DNA of 64,000 nt from Lepidodermella squamata (GCA_047495785.1 JBLDXI010000001.1:3472001-3536000); one strand, 5' to 3'; counted from the stretch's first letter, positions 4,663-44,655 are shown. Numbers and translations: made by a program. The notes: generated by a model not told the origin, from the letters alone.

Positions 4663-4734
4663 TTCCCTGACCGGGAATCGAACCCGGGCCGCCGCGGTGA
4701 AAGCGCGGAATCCTAACCACTAGACCATCAGGGA
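4663..4734 (-). tRNA. tRNA-Glu(TTC)
   Basis: TCCCTGATGGTCTAGTGGTTAGGATTCCGCGCTTTCACCGCGGCGGCCCGGGTTCGATTCCCGGTCAGGGAA forms a full cloverleaf with a TTTT terminator. Confidence 0.95.
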
Positions 4735-4841
4735 GATATGAAATTACATGCCTGGATTATGTGATAAATTTTCAATAGCTTGTTGAAAGTTGAAATTCAA
4801 ATGAAGAAAAATCGAGTGGGCCAAAGGCAGCGCAAAAGGTA

Positions 4842-4914
4842 CGCCGAGACCCGGGATCGAACCAGGGACCTTTAGATCTTCAGTCTAACGCTCTCCCAAC
4901 TGAGCTATCTCGGC
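4842..4914 (-). tRNA. tRNA-Phe(GAA)
   Basis: GCCGAGATAGCTCAGTTGGGAGAGCGTTAGACTGAAGATCTAAAGGTCCCTGGTTCGATCCCGGGTCTCGGCG has TTTT downstream. Confidence 0.95.
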
Positions 4915-39141: not shown

Positions 39142-39656
39142 CGTAATTTATACCGGGAAAAATTCGTAAAAATCCTGAAAATGAGCCATAATCTGAGATC
39201 TGAGGAACTAAATCGAAAAGAGCATTTTTCTTTGCGTTTACCTATCGATAAAAAATATATTATTATCTGCGATAGCAATGTTATGCTTTTCGCAGTCTAA
39301 TGATATACGAGTCAAGCCTTCCACCGACGATGATTGATGAAACGAGCATCCTCCTATATTCCAATATAAAACATGATAATCCCCGCAACAGATGTTTGTA
39401 TATAGATTGATCCCATGCTGCAAAAATGGGTTAAATCGAAATCGAAATTCTCGTAAAAATCATGCAATTCTATTGCCCTAATAGTTTTGCACTCTCTCCG
39501 CCAAAGGTGTAAAAAACAAGTTATCGAGGTGATTTTTTTATTCAAAATAATAGCAATAAAAATCATCACATTTGTGAGCACATCACTCTTTGGATTTATA
39601 TAGCAGCAGCAGCAGCACCACAACAACTTTTATTATGTATTCTCATTGTAATTTTT

Positions 39657-40958
<1,302 letters not shown>

Positions 40959-41099
40959 TCAAGGTGGCTCGTATCAATCGCAAATTAAATCTAGATCACG
41001 TCTAAAATACAACAACAGGAAACGAGTCAGAGAAATATGATCTTTTAAACATCGATTTGTCATCAAGATGATAAAGGAAACAAGAGAAGGGTGAGTGGG

Positions 41100-41682
41100 C
41101 TAGATATCAATTATCACAAAGACGTCGCAGCGCGGTGCACCAGCGTTTTCTGACTCCGTTTTCTCGTGAATTTGCATATTCGAATAGGTGATCGCCTTGA
41201 CTTCGGTGCCTTGCGGGTGTTTCGTCAAGTCGAATTCCTCGCCATAAACATCGGCTTTAATCGTAAAATTTTCGCGATCAAACTCGCGAATTCGAATTTT
41301 GCGGCCTATAAAATTTTGTTCGGCGCAAAATTGGTAGAGCAATTCATTCAAAAACGAGTAAAGCAACGTGTCCAAGTCGTGCCCGCTCGCTTCGATGCGA
41401 ATTTTCTGGTGAATTGATATCGTAGAAGGGTCGTCTGTCATATAAGCGTACATTGCCACGCCGGCTTGTTCGAAACATTTTGTTAAAGAATCACCCCAAG
41501 CGTGGATTTGAATGTCAGCAGGGTGGTCCAAATATTCATACTGTATTTCATCAGGGCCAGAGTCAAACTCAGGATCGTAATCATACCTGATTATACCAAT
41601 TTTCTATTTCCAAAAAACTCGACAATTTTGAGTAAAAAAACCTATAATCTGGCTCGTAATCTGCTGGATCGTCGAGTGCCAT
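41100..41682 (-). CDS. ZBTB8OS: Archease (RtcB tRNA-ligase cofactor); exons 41682-41642 and 41586-41100, 175 aa
   Basis: Motifs YEYLDHPADIQIHAWG, GTEVKAITYS and terminal DI. A 55-nt GT-AG intron supplies the only in-frame ATG upstream of the conserved motif. Confidence 0.9.
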
Positions 41683-41965
41683 TATTTTTTCGCCTGTTCG
41701 TCTTCAGCCCAACGTTTCTTCGCGTTGTGAATTTGGACGGCTTCAATGACGTTTTGAATCGCTTTCTTAGTTTCTTTATCTTCACTGCCCAAGTTGCCCT
41801 TAAATTCTTCAATAAACGACAACACACACCTAAATCGCAAAGTTTTACCTTGTTACCAGCAATTGCTCTTTCAAAGAAATAGGGATGGTTAAATAGGTAG
41901 AACAGACCGACTGGGAAGGTGACGTACATCGCCATACGAAAAACTTCTAGTTTCCAACCACCCAT
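41682..41965 (-). CDS. PET100: Cytochrome c oxidase assembly factor PET100; exons 41965-41857 and 41806-41682, 77 aa
   Basis: MGGWKLEVFRMAMYVTFPVGLFYLFN is the PET100 N-terminal signature. A 50-nt intron (GTAAC..GAAG) gives a charged helical tail ending EQAKK*. Confidence 0.85.
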
Positions 41966-42399
41966 TTTTCAATAATGGGCATCTATGGGGAAAAAAATCA
42001 GAAAAATCGCCATCTTTTATTAGTTTTTCCTCTCGGTTGAGTATACATCATCAGCGGCTAAAACAACCAACAAACCCTTGATATTTGACTACTTTTCGCA
42101 ATAAATACTCGAATCGAAACAACGAAAAAAATTCGTTATATTATCAGTGATTTTTCTCTTGTTCCCGGGTATAAGAGGAAAAATTTTCTCACTCAAAGAT
42201 GACAAACTGTTTTTGAGATGATTTTGCACATGGACGAACAGCAGCTTATGTAGCAAAACATCTGTTTGATGAGCATGAACGATACAAATAGAGGACACAA
42301 AATACACAGATATTTTTGCAACGTAAACAAAAAACAGCAGAAAACTTGGCATACACTTATTTAAAACAGATTATCTTCAAGGATTGCCAAATGACGAGA

Positions 42400-43677
42400 T
42401 TAAACACGCAACAGCTCAAGGTGGTTGTTATAAGTGATGGAGACCCAATCAGGCTGCGAGGAAGGCCAGTGAACTTGGTTTATTTCGCCCCCGGCAGTGT
42501 AGGCTAAAATCGGTTCTTCAATTGCTCGTGGTAGTTGACGGATGTCCCAAATTAAAGCCTGACGGTCATCAGCAACAGTACATATACTGAAAATTATTTC
42601 ATGAAATATACATTACTATAAATTAAAATATTGCATACTGGAAGGCTGAATGAGGTGCCCAACTAATCGAGTTAACGCAAGCTCTGTGATTACGAAGTTG
42701 AGCCACAGCCATACCCGGCATTCGAACGTCGATTATCACAACTTCTGGAGTGTCGATCACAAAGGTAGCTAGATAATTAGGGTCCTGTTTGTTCCAAGCG
42801 AGGCGGAGTAAAGGCAGATGGTTCGGGTCTTCATACATAATCGTCGATTGTTCGAGGTGCCGAAGATCGAACATTCGGACAGAGCCATCGGCACCGACTG
42901 ACGCAAACATGTCACGACCGCCGCCAGCTCGGCTGAAAGCGATGTCGTACACTTCTTTATCGTGAGCAATTAGCTGAGTTCGAACGTGACCATTCACGTG
43001 TTGCGATGTCCGGCCAACGACTTGGCCTGTTTCCAGCCCCCAAATCGTGCACGTCGTGTCGATGCTCGAGGTCCCGAGGAGAGTAGGATCGACTTCATTC
43101 CAATCAAACGAGGTGAGAGGAGCGCAGAAGTCAGAATTTTTGTTCTATTACAAAATAATTAATACGAAATTCTTTGAAAGCGTGTCTAACTTACGTTATT
43201 CAGTAGACATTCGAGTTTGGTTTCGCCATTTTCAGGATTAACCTTCCATAATCTTAAATAATCACCCGTCGTTGCAAGAAGATCGGCATGGACTCCGCCC
43301 TACATATTTTTCACGTAAAATACCTGCATAATAGTAAGACAGGCAGTGAGCTTACCGAGTCTGGCATCCATAGAATTTTCGTAGTCGGATAAGGGTGCTC
43401 AAACGTACTAATTACAGTGAATTCGCCCGAATTCTCGTCAAGCGTTACTATACGAACCTGAAAGTAAAAACAATTAAATAAATCATGATGAACGTCCTAG
43501 AGCGGGACTTGCTTTATTGTTGTATTCTTCTACGAAACTACCGACAGCTAGCCGAAAGTGACGGTCTTGACGAGTAGCCCATGCAAGGCCATATAGCACC
43601 CAAGGAGCTTCGTAACGATATATTTCTTTCCGTTTGTTGCCCCCAGAGTGAGCTTTAGCCGCTGAACCCTGAGCCAT
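42400..43677 (-). CDS. DCAF7: DDB1- and CUL4-associated factor 7 (WDR68), 5 exons
   Basis: Motifs [47 protein letters not shown] and C-terminal LELLRV*. Confidence 0.95.
43458..43512 (-). other. GC-AG intron in DCAF7
   Basis: AAA|GCAAGT...TTTCAG|GTT restores the conserved YNNK-V junction. The intron is 55 nt. Confidence 0.85.
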
Positions 43678-44655
43678 TTAAAATGAACCTAATACGAAGG
43701 AAAGAAAGTAATCAACACTTGCAGTAGGATAGAACATCGCAACATCGCATTACTTGACCGGTCAAGAATGTAAATCGTGAATCAAATGAGTACATATCGA
43801 CAGTGCATATTAAGCCTTAGCAAGTAATTAAATAGCTGATTCGCGAAAATAAAAGTTCCACGGGCAAAAAGCATGACACTGTTGCTACCTTTTCATTCAT
43901 AAACTACGAAGTGATCCCGCCATTCAAGCATTCGGATATTCCAACTCGAAATTCGAAAATCACACCCATCTAATCATTTTCAACGCTTCATTTGATCAGG
44001 TTGGGAATGACGGATGACGGAAATCGGCCAAATAAGGCACCTGAGATATCATTGCCACATGCCGTAGACCCGCAATGCGTAATGCGCGCTACGCTAGTCC
44101 GACTGCTCATCCTCTCGGCGCAAACCGAAGCTCAGCAAAAAAGTTCAGCACAAAATCACAAAAATCATCGAAATTACGCTTTGACGGATAATAAAACCTG
44201 CAAATTTGCATTCTGATGGATCGAAATCGGTTGAGCATTAATTTTCTATGAACGCAACTCAAATAAAATATTTTTGATCTTGAACGAATTTTGAATTATT
44301 CATGAGTTGTTTTGGCGCGCCGTCATTTTTTTGAGGACATCTTTTGCCTTGTCCCAGGGTGCTCTCTTGGGCATTGCGCCTAATCTGTGAAGTTGATATT
44401 TACTTGCTGTATTCTTGCTTCTTGCTATAATTTGAATTAGGTACTTATGCCCGATTTCCAATCTAACTTGCTCATATTTTGTTTTTCTCATCATTTCGGC
44501 TTGCTAAGACAATTTCGCATTATCGAGCACGATGGAACTGAACGTCCTGAGTTACCTTCGGTTTTTTCAGCGCATGAAATCTCATCTTGTTATAGTCTTA
44601 GCATACTTACTTTAGTTTTAATCTTGCAATCACGTGTCTTTGGTTTTAGATTTTG
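43678..44655. promoter_or_regulatory. Divergent intergenic region between DCAF7 and DGCR8 (probable bidirectional promoter)
   Basis: The genes are head-to-head with under 1 kb between start codons. This is a positional inference only. Confidence 0.5.

Follow-up and report, generated by a model that had tools for sequence, protein, structure and literature searches.

In Drosophila, FlyBase annotates 159 dicistronic gene pairs, and 26 genes carried on polycistronic transcripts share a coding stretch with an overlapping gene that is read in a different frame; on these figures, the statement in an initial annotation of the locus described here that bicistronic coupling is rare in animal cellular genes is overstated (PMC4528330). 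Hundreds of polycistronic transcripts have been reported in green algae, many of them encoding mitochondrial proteins, and a PET100 orthologue is found at one bicistronic locus, with translation by leaky scanning (PMC11291117). Termination-reinitiation classically occurs where stop and start codons overlap, as in UAAUG, and in caliciviruses and influenza B it depends on TURBS (PMC10275272). Operons without an intercistronic region are known from Ciona and, as SL1-type operons, from C. elegans, and no operons have been reported for rotifers (PMC7986045).

The locus compared with these systems lies in the 64,000-nucleotide stretch of DNA that was analysed (the window), where the stop codon of the gene for PET100, a complex IV assembly factor, shares a nucleotide with the start codon of the gene for archease. 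The best reading of the evidence presented below is that PET100 and archease are expressed jointly as one mature dicistronic mRNA of ~850 nt plus tail. What is known here is the type of arrangement, and what is new is the gene pair and the lineage, not a new mechanism; a literature search found no paper on a PET100-archease dicistron. As with the Drosophila dicistrons (PMC4528330), the locus is an animal nuclear one whose mature mRNA carries two conserved ORFs unrelated to each other, and some of the fly pairs likewise overlap in different frames, the mechanism of ORF2 translation in flies being mostly unknown. Unlike the fly pairs, PET100-archease sits in an operon-like run of a genome that seems to trans-splice.

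With respect to gene order, the minus strand of the window carries a DCAF7-like gene, PET100-archease and an FDX2-like gene as an operon-like run. All PET100-archease features are oriented on the minus strand, and the parts of the locus are as follows.

42400-42402, minus strand: stop codon TAA of the upstream gene, a DCAF7-like WD40 gene identified by WD40 profile matches.
41983-42000, minus strand: pyrimidine tract with AG (41984-41983), where the PET100-archease RNA has its 5' limit and a spliced leader is probably accepted.
41947-41982, minus strand: 11-codon upstream ORF (ATG 41982, TAG 41949-41947), which overlaps the start of PET100 in another frame.
41849-41965, minus strand: PET100 coding exon 1, 39 codons, the transmembrane part (Pfam PF09803; ATG 41965, context aaaATGg).
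41799-41848, minus strand: PET100 intron, 50 nt, GT..AG, with an RNA joint at 41797/41848 in X1 (depth 347.7) and X3 (39.3).
41682-41798, minus strand: PET100 coding exon 2, 38 codons plus TAA (41684-41682), supported by RNA contigs and without ATG in any frame.
41680-41684, minus strand: TAATG overlap of the PET100 stop TAA (41684-41682) and the archease ATG (41682-41680), with one A (41682) common to both.
41642-41682, minus strand: first coding exon of archease, with 13 codons and 2 further nt (ATG in the context ataATGg).
41587-41641, minus strand: archease intron, 55 nt, GT..AG, with an RNA joint at 41584/41640 in X1 (depth 512.7) and X3 (39.3).
41100-41586, minus strand: archease coding exon 2 with stop TAG 41102-41100 (Pfam PF01951).
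41027-41099, minus strand: archease 3' UTR, with poly(A) addition at 41027 (end of X3 record 16).
41002-41026, minus strand: T-rich spacer with AG (41003-41002), the probable trans-splice acceptor of the FDX2-like gene (ATG 40958).

On the minus strand the junction reads GCG AAA AAA TAA TGG, and the TAATG overlap reported in the initial annotation was borne out at exactly these positions. Several further points in that annotation also held: an in-frame TGA lies 8 codons before the archease ATG (at 41706), an in-frame TAG lies inside the archease intron (41606-41604), there is no in-frame ATG in archease from the acceptor to the YEYLDH motif, and the last PET100 exon is free of ATG, in fact in all frames. 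The first AUG past the PET100 intron acceptor is accordingly confirmed to be that of archease in the window, and likewise in the related scaffold described below. The archease intron is 41641-41587 in the RNA, in line with the start coordinate of the annotated stretch, whereas the PET100 intron, previously placed at 41856-41807, was wrong, RNA-derived contigs placing it at 41848-41799. Both PET100 intron models are 50 nt long and keep an identical frame, and the stop codon is unaffected by the correction; exon 2 now begins at 41798 and not 41806, the intron has the donor AAG/GTAAAA and the acceptor TTTAAG/GGC, and the protein reads ...AIAGNK/GNLGSED... across the joint. Shifting an RNA joint by one base also revealed that an RNA-verified intron of the DCAF7-like gene (43458-43512, minus strand) is of the GC..AG type.

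The predicted proteins are 77 aa (PET100) and 175 aa (archease) long. PET100 exon 1 alone matched Pfam PF09803 at 2.2e-16 over profile positions 1-37, its 60.3 bits lying above the curated cut-off of 24, and the N-terminal transmembrane segment of the family is present; the N-terminus was closest to mollusc PET100, with 88% identity to Physella over 33 residues. The main exon of archease (41579-41103) matched Pfam PF01951 at 5e-42 (143.9 bits) over profile positions 1-136 of 136. A protein search with archease returned 821 homologues. The window's own archease was not among the entries of the protein collection, and the named archease matches, spread across many phyla, were about 60% identical or less, while an ORF for DIS3L2 from the window reached about 40%. 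Because these named matches are so distant, the animal is, as far as protein identity can tell, a member of a poorly sampled lineage.

The nearest archease relative among the protein-collection matches came from a single metagenome scaffold (L001), in which the gene order is DCAF7, PET100, archease and FDX2, as in the window. Identity to the window was 79% for the archease main exon, 80% for the whole archease protein and 64% at the amino-acid level for PET100, and synonymous codon changes were found at 78 of 139 conserved residues of archease and 23 of 47 of PET100. By these measures the two species are deeply diverged; the tight pairing nonetheless persists, and purifying selection acts on both frames. 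Of the 13 codons of archease exon 1, 8 differ synonymously from their counterparts and 1 conservatively; the archease ATG is therefore the true start, with exon 1 translated in that frame. While the adjacency of the two genes was thus recovered in a relative, as the initial annotation had proposed to check, TAATG itself was not: in L001, 18 nt separate the PET100 stop TAA from the archease ATG, with both ORFs in one frame, TAA plus six codons apart. The position of the PET100 intron is conserved there. The scaffold also has an extra PET100 intron past codon 10 (L001 7382-7815), and its introns are longer, at 80-170 nt, than those of the window, which measure 50-57 nt.

Elsewhere the pairing was not recovered. 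PET100 was found upstream of archease at none of 50 other metagenome archease loci (all at most 54% identical), was absent within 6-8 kb of archease in Hypsibius and Lingula, and had no archease beside it in Physella; in a compact metagenome eukaryote PET100 was followed by a WD40 gene and not by archease. Because of this absence from the metagenome loci, Hypsibius and Lingula, and the other PET100 neighbours in Physella and the compact eukaryote, the linkage is, on the genomes compared, lineage-specific. One weak PET100 match, in L019, was rejected because it belongs to archease, as an extension of its N-terminus. In another organism, a Logan contig of 2.25 kb (L054, SRR8690377, positions 243-2044) carried archease followed by TMEM254 on the same strand 726 nt later.

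Contigs of three public runs (X1, X2 and X3) were mapped onto positions 39600-43700. X2 was found to be DNA, with one 2.1-kb contig collinear with the genome and introns kept. X1 and X3, which come from separate studies, behaved as RNA, as demonstrated by GT..AG joints and by almost no depth across the long FDX2 intron, and they agreed on both introns of the pair (PET100, 41848-41799; archease, 41641-41587). Record 16 of X3 (879 nt) comprised 4 non-genomic letters, the segments 41984-41848, 41797-41640 and 41584-41027, and then 22 non-genomic A, this 22-nt tail being A on the minus strand and T on the plus strand. The record holds both complete ORFs, spliced and polyadenylated, and neither neighbour gene, and the mature PET100-archease RNA therefore looks dicistronic. 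It is an assembled contig and not a single molecule, and a contig over two genes is not equivalent to proof of one transcript; contigs in general drop rare variants. One mature RNA with both ORFs was found in this form, as an assembled contig and not as a single read, and both ORFs are conserved as coding.

K-mer depth of contigs, a weak measure, was about equal on PET100 and archease, unlike on both neighbours. In X1 it was 347.7 at the PET100 junction and 338.8-533 on archease, compared with 179.7 on the DCAF7-like and 90.6 on the FDX2-like gene, while in X3 it was 39.3 on PET100-archease and 6.45 and 10.6 on the neighbours. Together with the spliced and polyadenylated X3 record, this near-equal depth supports one mRNA with both coding sequences, which is the RNA half of the stop-restart option raised in the initial annotation. 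No poly(A)-tailed or leader-bearing contig end was observed between PET100 and archease in the X1 and X3 contigs, nor any alternative joint into the archease acceptor. One X1 contig terminated near 41977. Another X1 contig end, at 41726, was rejected as a leader junction as it coincides with no AG, and a SMART adapter joined at 41086 in X1 was set aside, its orientation being wrong for a true RNA end.

The neighbouring DCAF7-like and FDX2-like genes were on separate contigs, with depths differing from that of PET100-archease. The 3' UTR of the DCAF7-like gene lay under an RNA contig down to 42042 (X1 record 4, 42042-42586, depth 179.7), and no RNA cover of 41985-42041 was present in X1 or X3. 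The acceptors flanking the PET100-archease unit have the best tracts: the pyrimidine fraction was 0.83 for the PET100 5' acceptor, the top of all acceptors examined, and 0.78 for the acceptor on the FDX2 side. Downstream, only 25 nt separate the archease poly(A) site from the probable FDX2-like acceptor, and the FDX2-like ATG lies 44 nt beyond the AG, an arrangement typical of operon junctions resolved by trans-splicing. As the archease 3' UTR is without AATAAA, the genome seems to use degenerate poly(A) signals.

As in the operons of C. elegans (SL1-type included), Ciona and Oikopleura (PMC7986045), unrelated housekeeping genes follow one another closely on one strand, and the archease/FDX2 junction shares with SL-resolved operons a poly(A) site and a strong acceptor within 25 nt. 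In those operons, however, the mature mRNAs are monocistronic and have their own UTRs, whereas the PET100 and archease coding sequences overlap and, as judged from the contig, are on one mature RNA. The upstream boundary of the unit is marked by the gap in RNA coverage and the strong acceptor, and the PET100/archease junction by neither kind of signal. AGs within PET100 exon 2 are purine-rich upstream, with a T fraction of 0.11-0.28 as against at least 0.33 in 10 RNA-verified introns, and the combination of poly(A) site and leader acceptor that characterizes an SL-operon junction was absent between PET100 and archease in the contigs, from which minor forms may drop out.

Evidence of a leader for the four-gene run consists of the 4 non-genomic letters with which the RNA of the unit begins. 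They could represent the last letters of a spliced leader; the 5' end at the strong acceptor (41983/41982) probably receives one, and the genome probably trans-splices. An Rfam scan detected no leader RNA gene in the window, the only matches being two tRNA genes, about 110 nt apart on the minus strand (4663-4914). In X2 DNA the pyrimidine tract that precedes the PET100 5' acceptor contains a 9-nt insertion at 41989 (AAAAAAATC, plus strand), and the archease intron has several indels; the samples thus differ in the non-coding parts of the unit.

With respect to how archease is produced, we tentatively favour the dicistronic mRNA with termination-reinitiation as the likeliest route, at somewhat less than even confidence. 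The dicistronic RNA would then be the template for archease. Ribosomes entering at the 5' end would first translate PET100, a short frame of 77 codons, and would terminate at its UAA; a 40S subunit could be retained on the A-rich junction and restart at the overlapping archease AUG, which is in good context (A at -3, G at +4). Restart is favoured by the near-zero spacing of stop and start in both species, the proximity seen in TURBS-type systems (TAATG in the window, 18 nt in L001), together with the short first frame. The layout resembles calicivirus VP1/VP2 and influenza B M1/BM2 (UAAUG; PMC10275272) in that stop and start share nucleotides and the downstream frame is out of phase. It differs from these viral TURBS systems in that the genes are cellular, the first ORF is short, and neither UGGGA nor a structured upstream element accompanies the junction. 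TURBS motif 1, which is complementary to 18S rRNA and was searched for as the sequence TGGGA/UGGGA, was absent from the whole mRNA upstream of the junction, the nearest sequences being UGGGC in the window and UGGAC in L001, which are not conserved. No significant RNA structure was detected near the junction (z -0.7 to +2.4), and the 90 nt before it, where a TURBS structure would lie, gave z = -0.67 in the window and +0.83 in L001; if anything, the junction is an unstructured A-rich stretch. Several points count against termination-reinitiation. With 77 codons the first frame is rather long for reinitiation to be efficient, neither component of the viral helper element (UGGGA, structure) is present, and TAATG itself is not conserved, stop and start being apart in L001. 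In addition, an ATG-free run of ~200 nt precedes the archease start in both species, which is a prediction of the scanning model and needless for reinitiation.

That run belongs to the first of the alternatives, in which the same dicistronic mRNA yields archease by leaky scanning, some 40S subunits bypassing the PET100 start codon together with the in-frame AUGs of codons 11 and 13, an explanation we regard as possible though unlikely. The start codons that a scanning ribosome would meet are listed by position in the mRNA.

mRNA nt 3, minus strand: ATG of the 11-codon out-of-frame upstream ORF, not conserved.
mRNA nt 20, minus strand: PET100 start, with A at -3 and G at +4.
mRNA nt 50 and 56, minus strand: in-frame Met 11 and Met 13 of PET100.
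mRNA nt 253, minus strand: archease start, with A at -3 and G at +4.

Between the PET100 and archease starts there are thus two in-frame AUGs (codons 11 and 13) followed by 197 nt, from nt 56 to 253 (PET100 codon 14 to the archease ATG), that are free of ATG in all frames. In L001 the ATGs fall at mRNA nt 1, 9, 31 and 41, with none after that until nt 243. A scanning ribosome would therefore meet no ATG in any frame after nt 56 in the window, or nt 41 in L001, before an archease AUG whose own context is strong, and a stretch this long arose with P = 0.035 under synonymous resampling in which protein and codon usage were kept. Leaky scanning has also been demonstrated for green-algal bicistrons, one of them a locus with a PET100 orthologue (PMC11291117). 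As 6.5% of the 197-nt segments taken from long ORFs of the window are ATG-free anyway, however, the run is only mildly unusual and is weak as a discriminator of mechanism. The PET100 AUG is moreover in strong context in both species (aaaATGg in the window; ggaaATGg, with G at -3 and G at +4, in L001), with two to three more AUGs behind it, and leaky scanning leaves the near-zero stop-to-start distance in both species unexplained. The green-algal loci (PMC7896298, PMC11291117) are comparable in having exclusively bicistronic transcripts and in encoding many mitochondrial proteins, among them several cytochrome c oxidase assembly factors and the PET100 orthologue. They are unlike the present locus in that the algal ORF1 context is weak, gaps often exceed 100 nt and leaky scanning has been shown experimentally, whereas PET100-archease has a strong first start context and a gap given as -4 nt (+18 nt in L001). 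The 11-codon upstream ORF, which starts at the first base past the putative acceptor, is not kept in L001, where no ATG lies upstream of the PET100 start; in its place the scaffold has a 3-codon out-of-frame mini-ORF just past the PET100 AUG.

The second alternative, that archease is made mainly from its own monocistronic mRNA while the dicistronic RNA serves PET100 only, we likewise consider possible though unlikely. Such an mRNA could perhaps arise by SL trans-splicing at 41800-41799 or at an exon 2 AG (e.g. 41695-41694), or from an internal transcription start. This explanation draws on a genome that probably trans-splices, in which the 5' end of the unit itself coincides with a strong acceptor and carries 4 non-genomic letters; on the archease AUG being the first past the PET100 acceptor in both species, with the PET100 intron position conserved; and on a depth in X1 that is up to 1.5 times higher on archease than on the PET100 junction contig, minor forms being in any case lost from contigs. 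The initial annotation had gone further and suggested one acceptor shared between cis-splicing, giving PET100, and SL trans-splicing, giving archease. No support for this was found: the coordinate invoked for the switch (41807) differs from the RNA-verified acceptor, and among all X1 and X3 contigs with non-matching ends none ended inside PET100 or archease and none carried a leader at 41798, at 41806 or at the exon 2 AGs. For monocistronic archease mRNA more generally, the same absence of non-genomic sequence at internal acceptors (no contigs in X1 or X3) is unfavourable, as are the X3 contig, which is unbranched throughout PET100-archease, the nearly equal depth on both frames and the poor acceptor context of the internal AGs. 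A separate PET100 mRNA would also need a poly(A) site inside archease, where no tailed end was observed.

A further explanation, that the single contig is an assembly artefact merging overlapping but separate transcripts, or is an unprocessed precursor, appears very improbable. It is true that contigs in X1 are fragmented and that a single transcript does not follow from a contig over two genes. Both introns are gone from X3 record 16, however, and because it is spliced, runs from the acceptor to the poly(A) and includes neither neighbour, it is not a raw precursor; the coding overlap also means that two complete separate mRNAs would each carry part of the other gene. Fusion of PET100 to archease by recoding, through a -1 shift on the A-run in the window (where archease is read in frame -1 relative to PET100 and the stop comes after six A's) and TAA readthrough in L001 (where the frames are identical, with TAA and 6 codons between), is the least credible of all: a stimulatory structure is lacking downstream (z = +1.0 and +2.3), the heptamer does not conform to a canonical slippery site, the two species would require two different recoding events, and joining an inner-membrane assembly factor to archease, a tRNA ligase cofactor, has no known rationale.

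If archease is made from the dicistronic RNA, then certain gene pairs stay together on one mature mRNA even in an animal that is able to resolve polycistronic precursors by trans-splicing. PET100-archease offers a natural cellular UAAUG junction, without a viral helper, for telling termination-reinitiation from leaky scanning. A broader proposal, which we put forward as speculative and rather improbable, is that this animal lineage may routinely keep gene pairs as dicistronic mRNAs inside trans-spliced operons, the second gene being translated by a restart that needs no TURBS, at stop and start codons that overlap or abut, a bacteria-like coupling acting genome-wide. On this proposal PET100-archease would be a single instance of the coupling, with RNA data behind it. 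The frequent occurrence of small mitochondrial assembly factors at bicistronic loci in green algae hints at a general rule. Gene finders built on the assumption that each mRNA has a single ORF will overlook PET100 or model the pair wrongly.

Two observations concern the FDX2-like gene downstream of the unit. Inside its 630-nt intron, at 40559-40695, the depth of X2 DNA rose to 1683 compared with about 116 elsewhere, with many contig breaks and with low-depth opposite-strand joints in X1; this segment looks like a high-copy repeat or a small mobile element with inverted ends. In X3, the exon before the first FDX2-like intron (40802-40859, minus strand) runs into similar but diverged sequence with several mismatches in 26 nt, which suggests a second allele or a paralogous copy.
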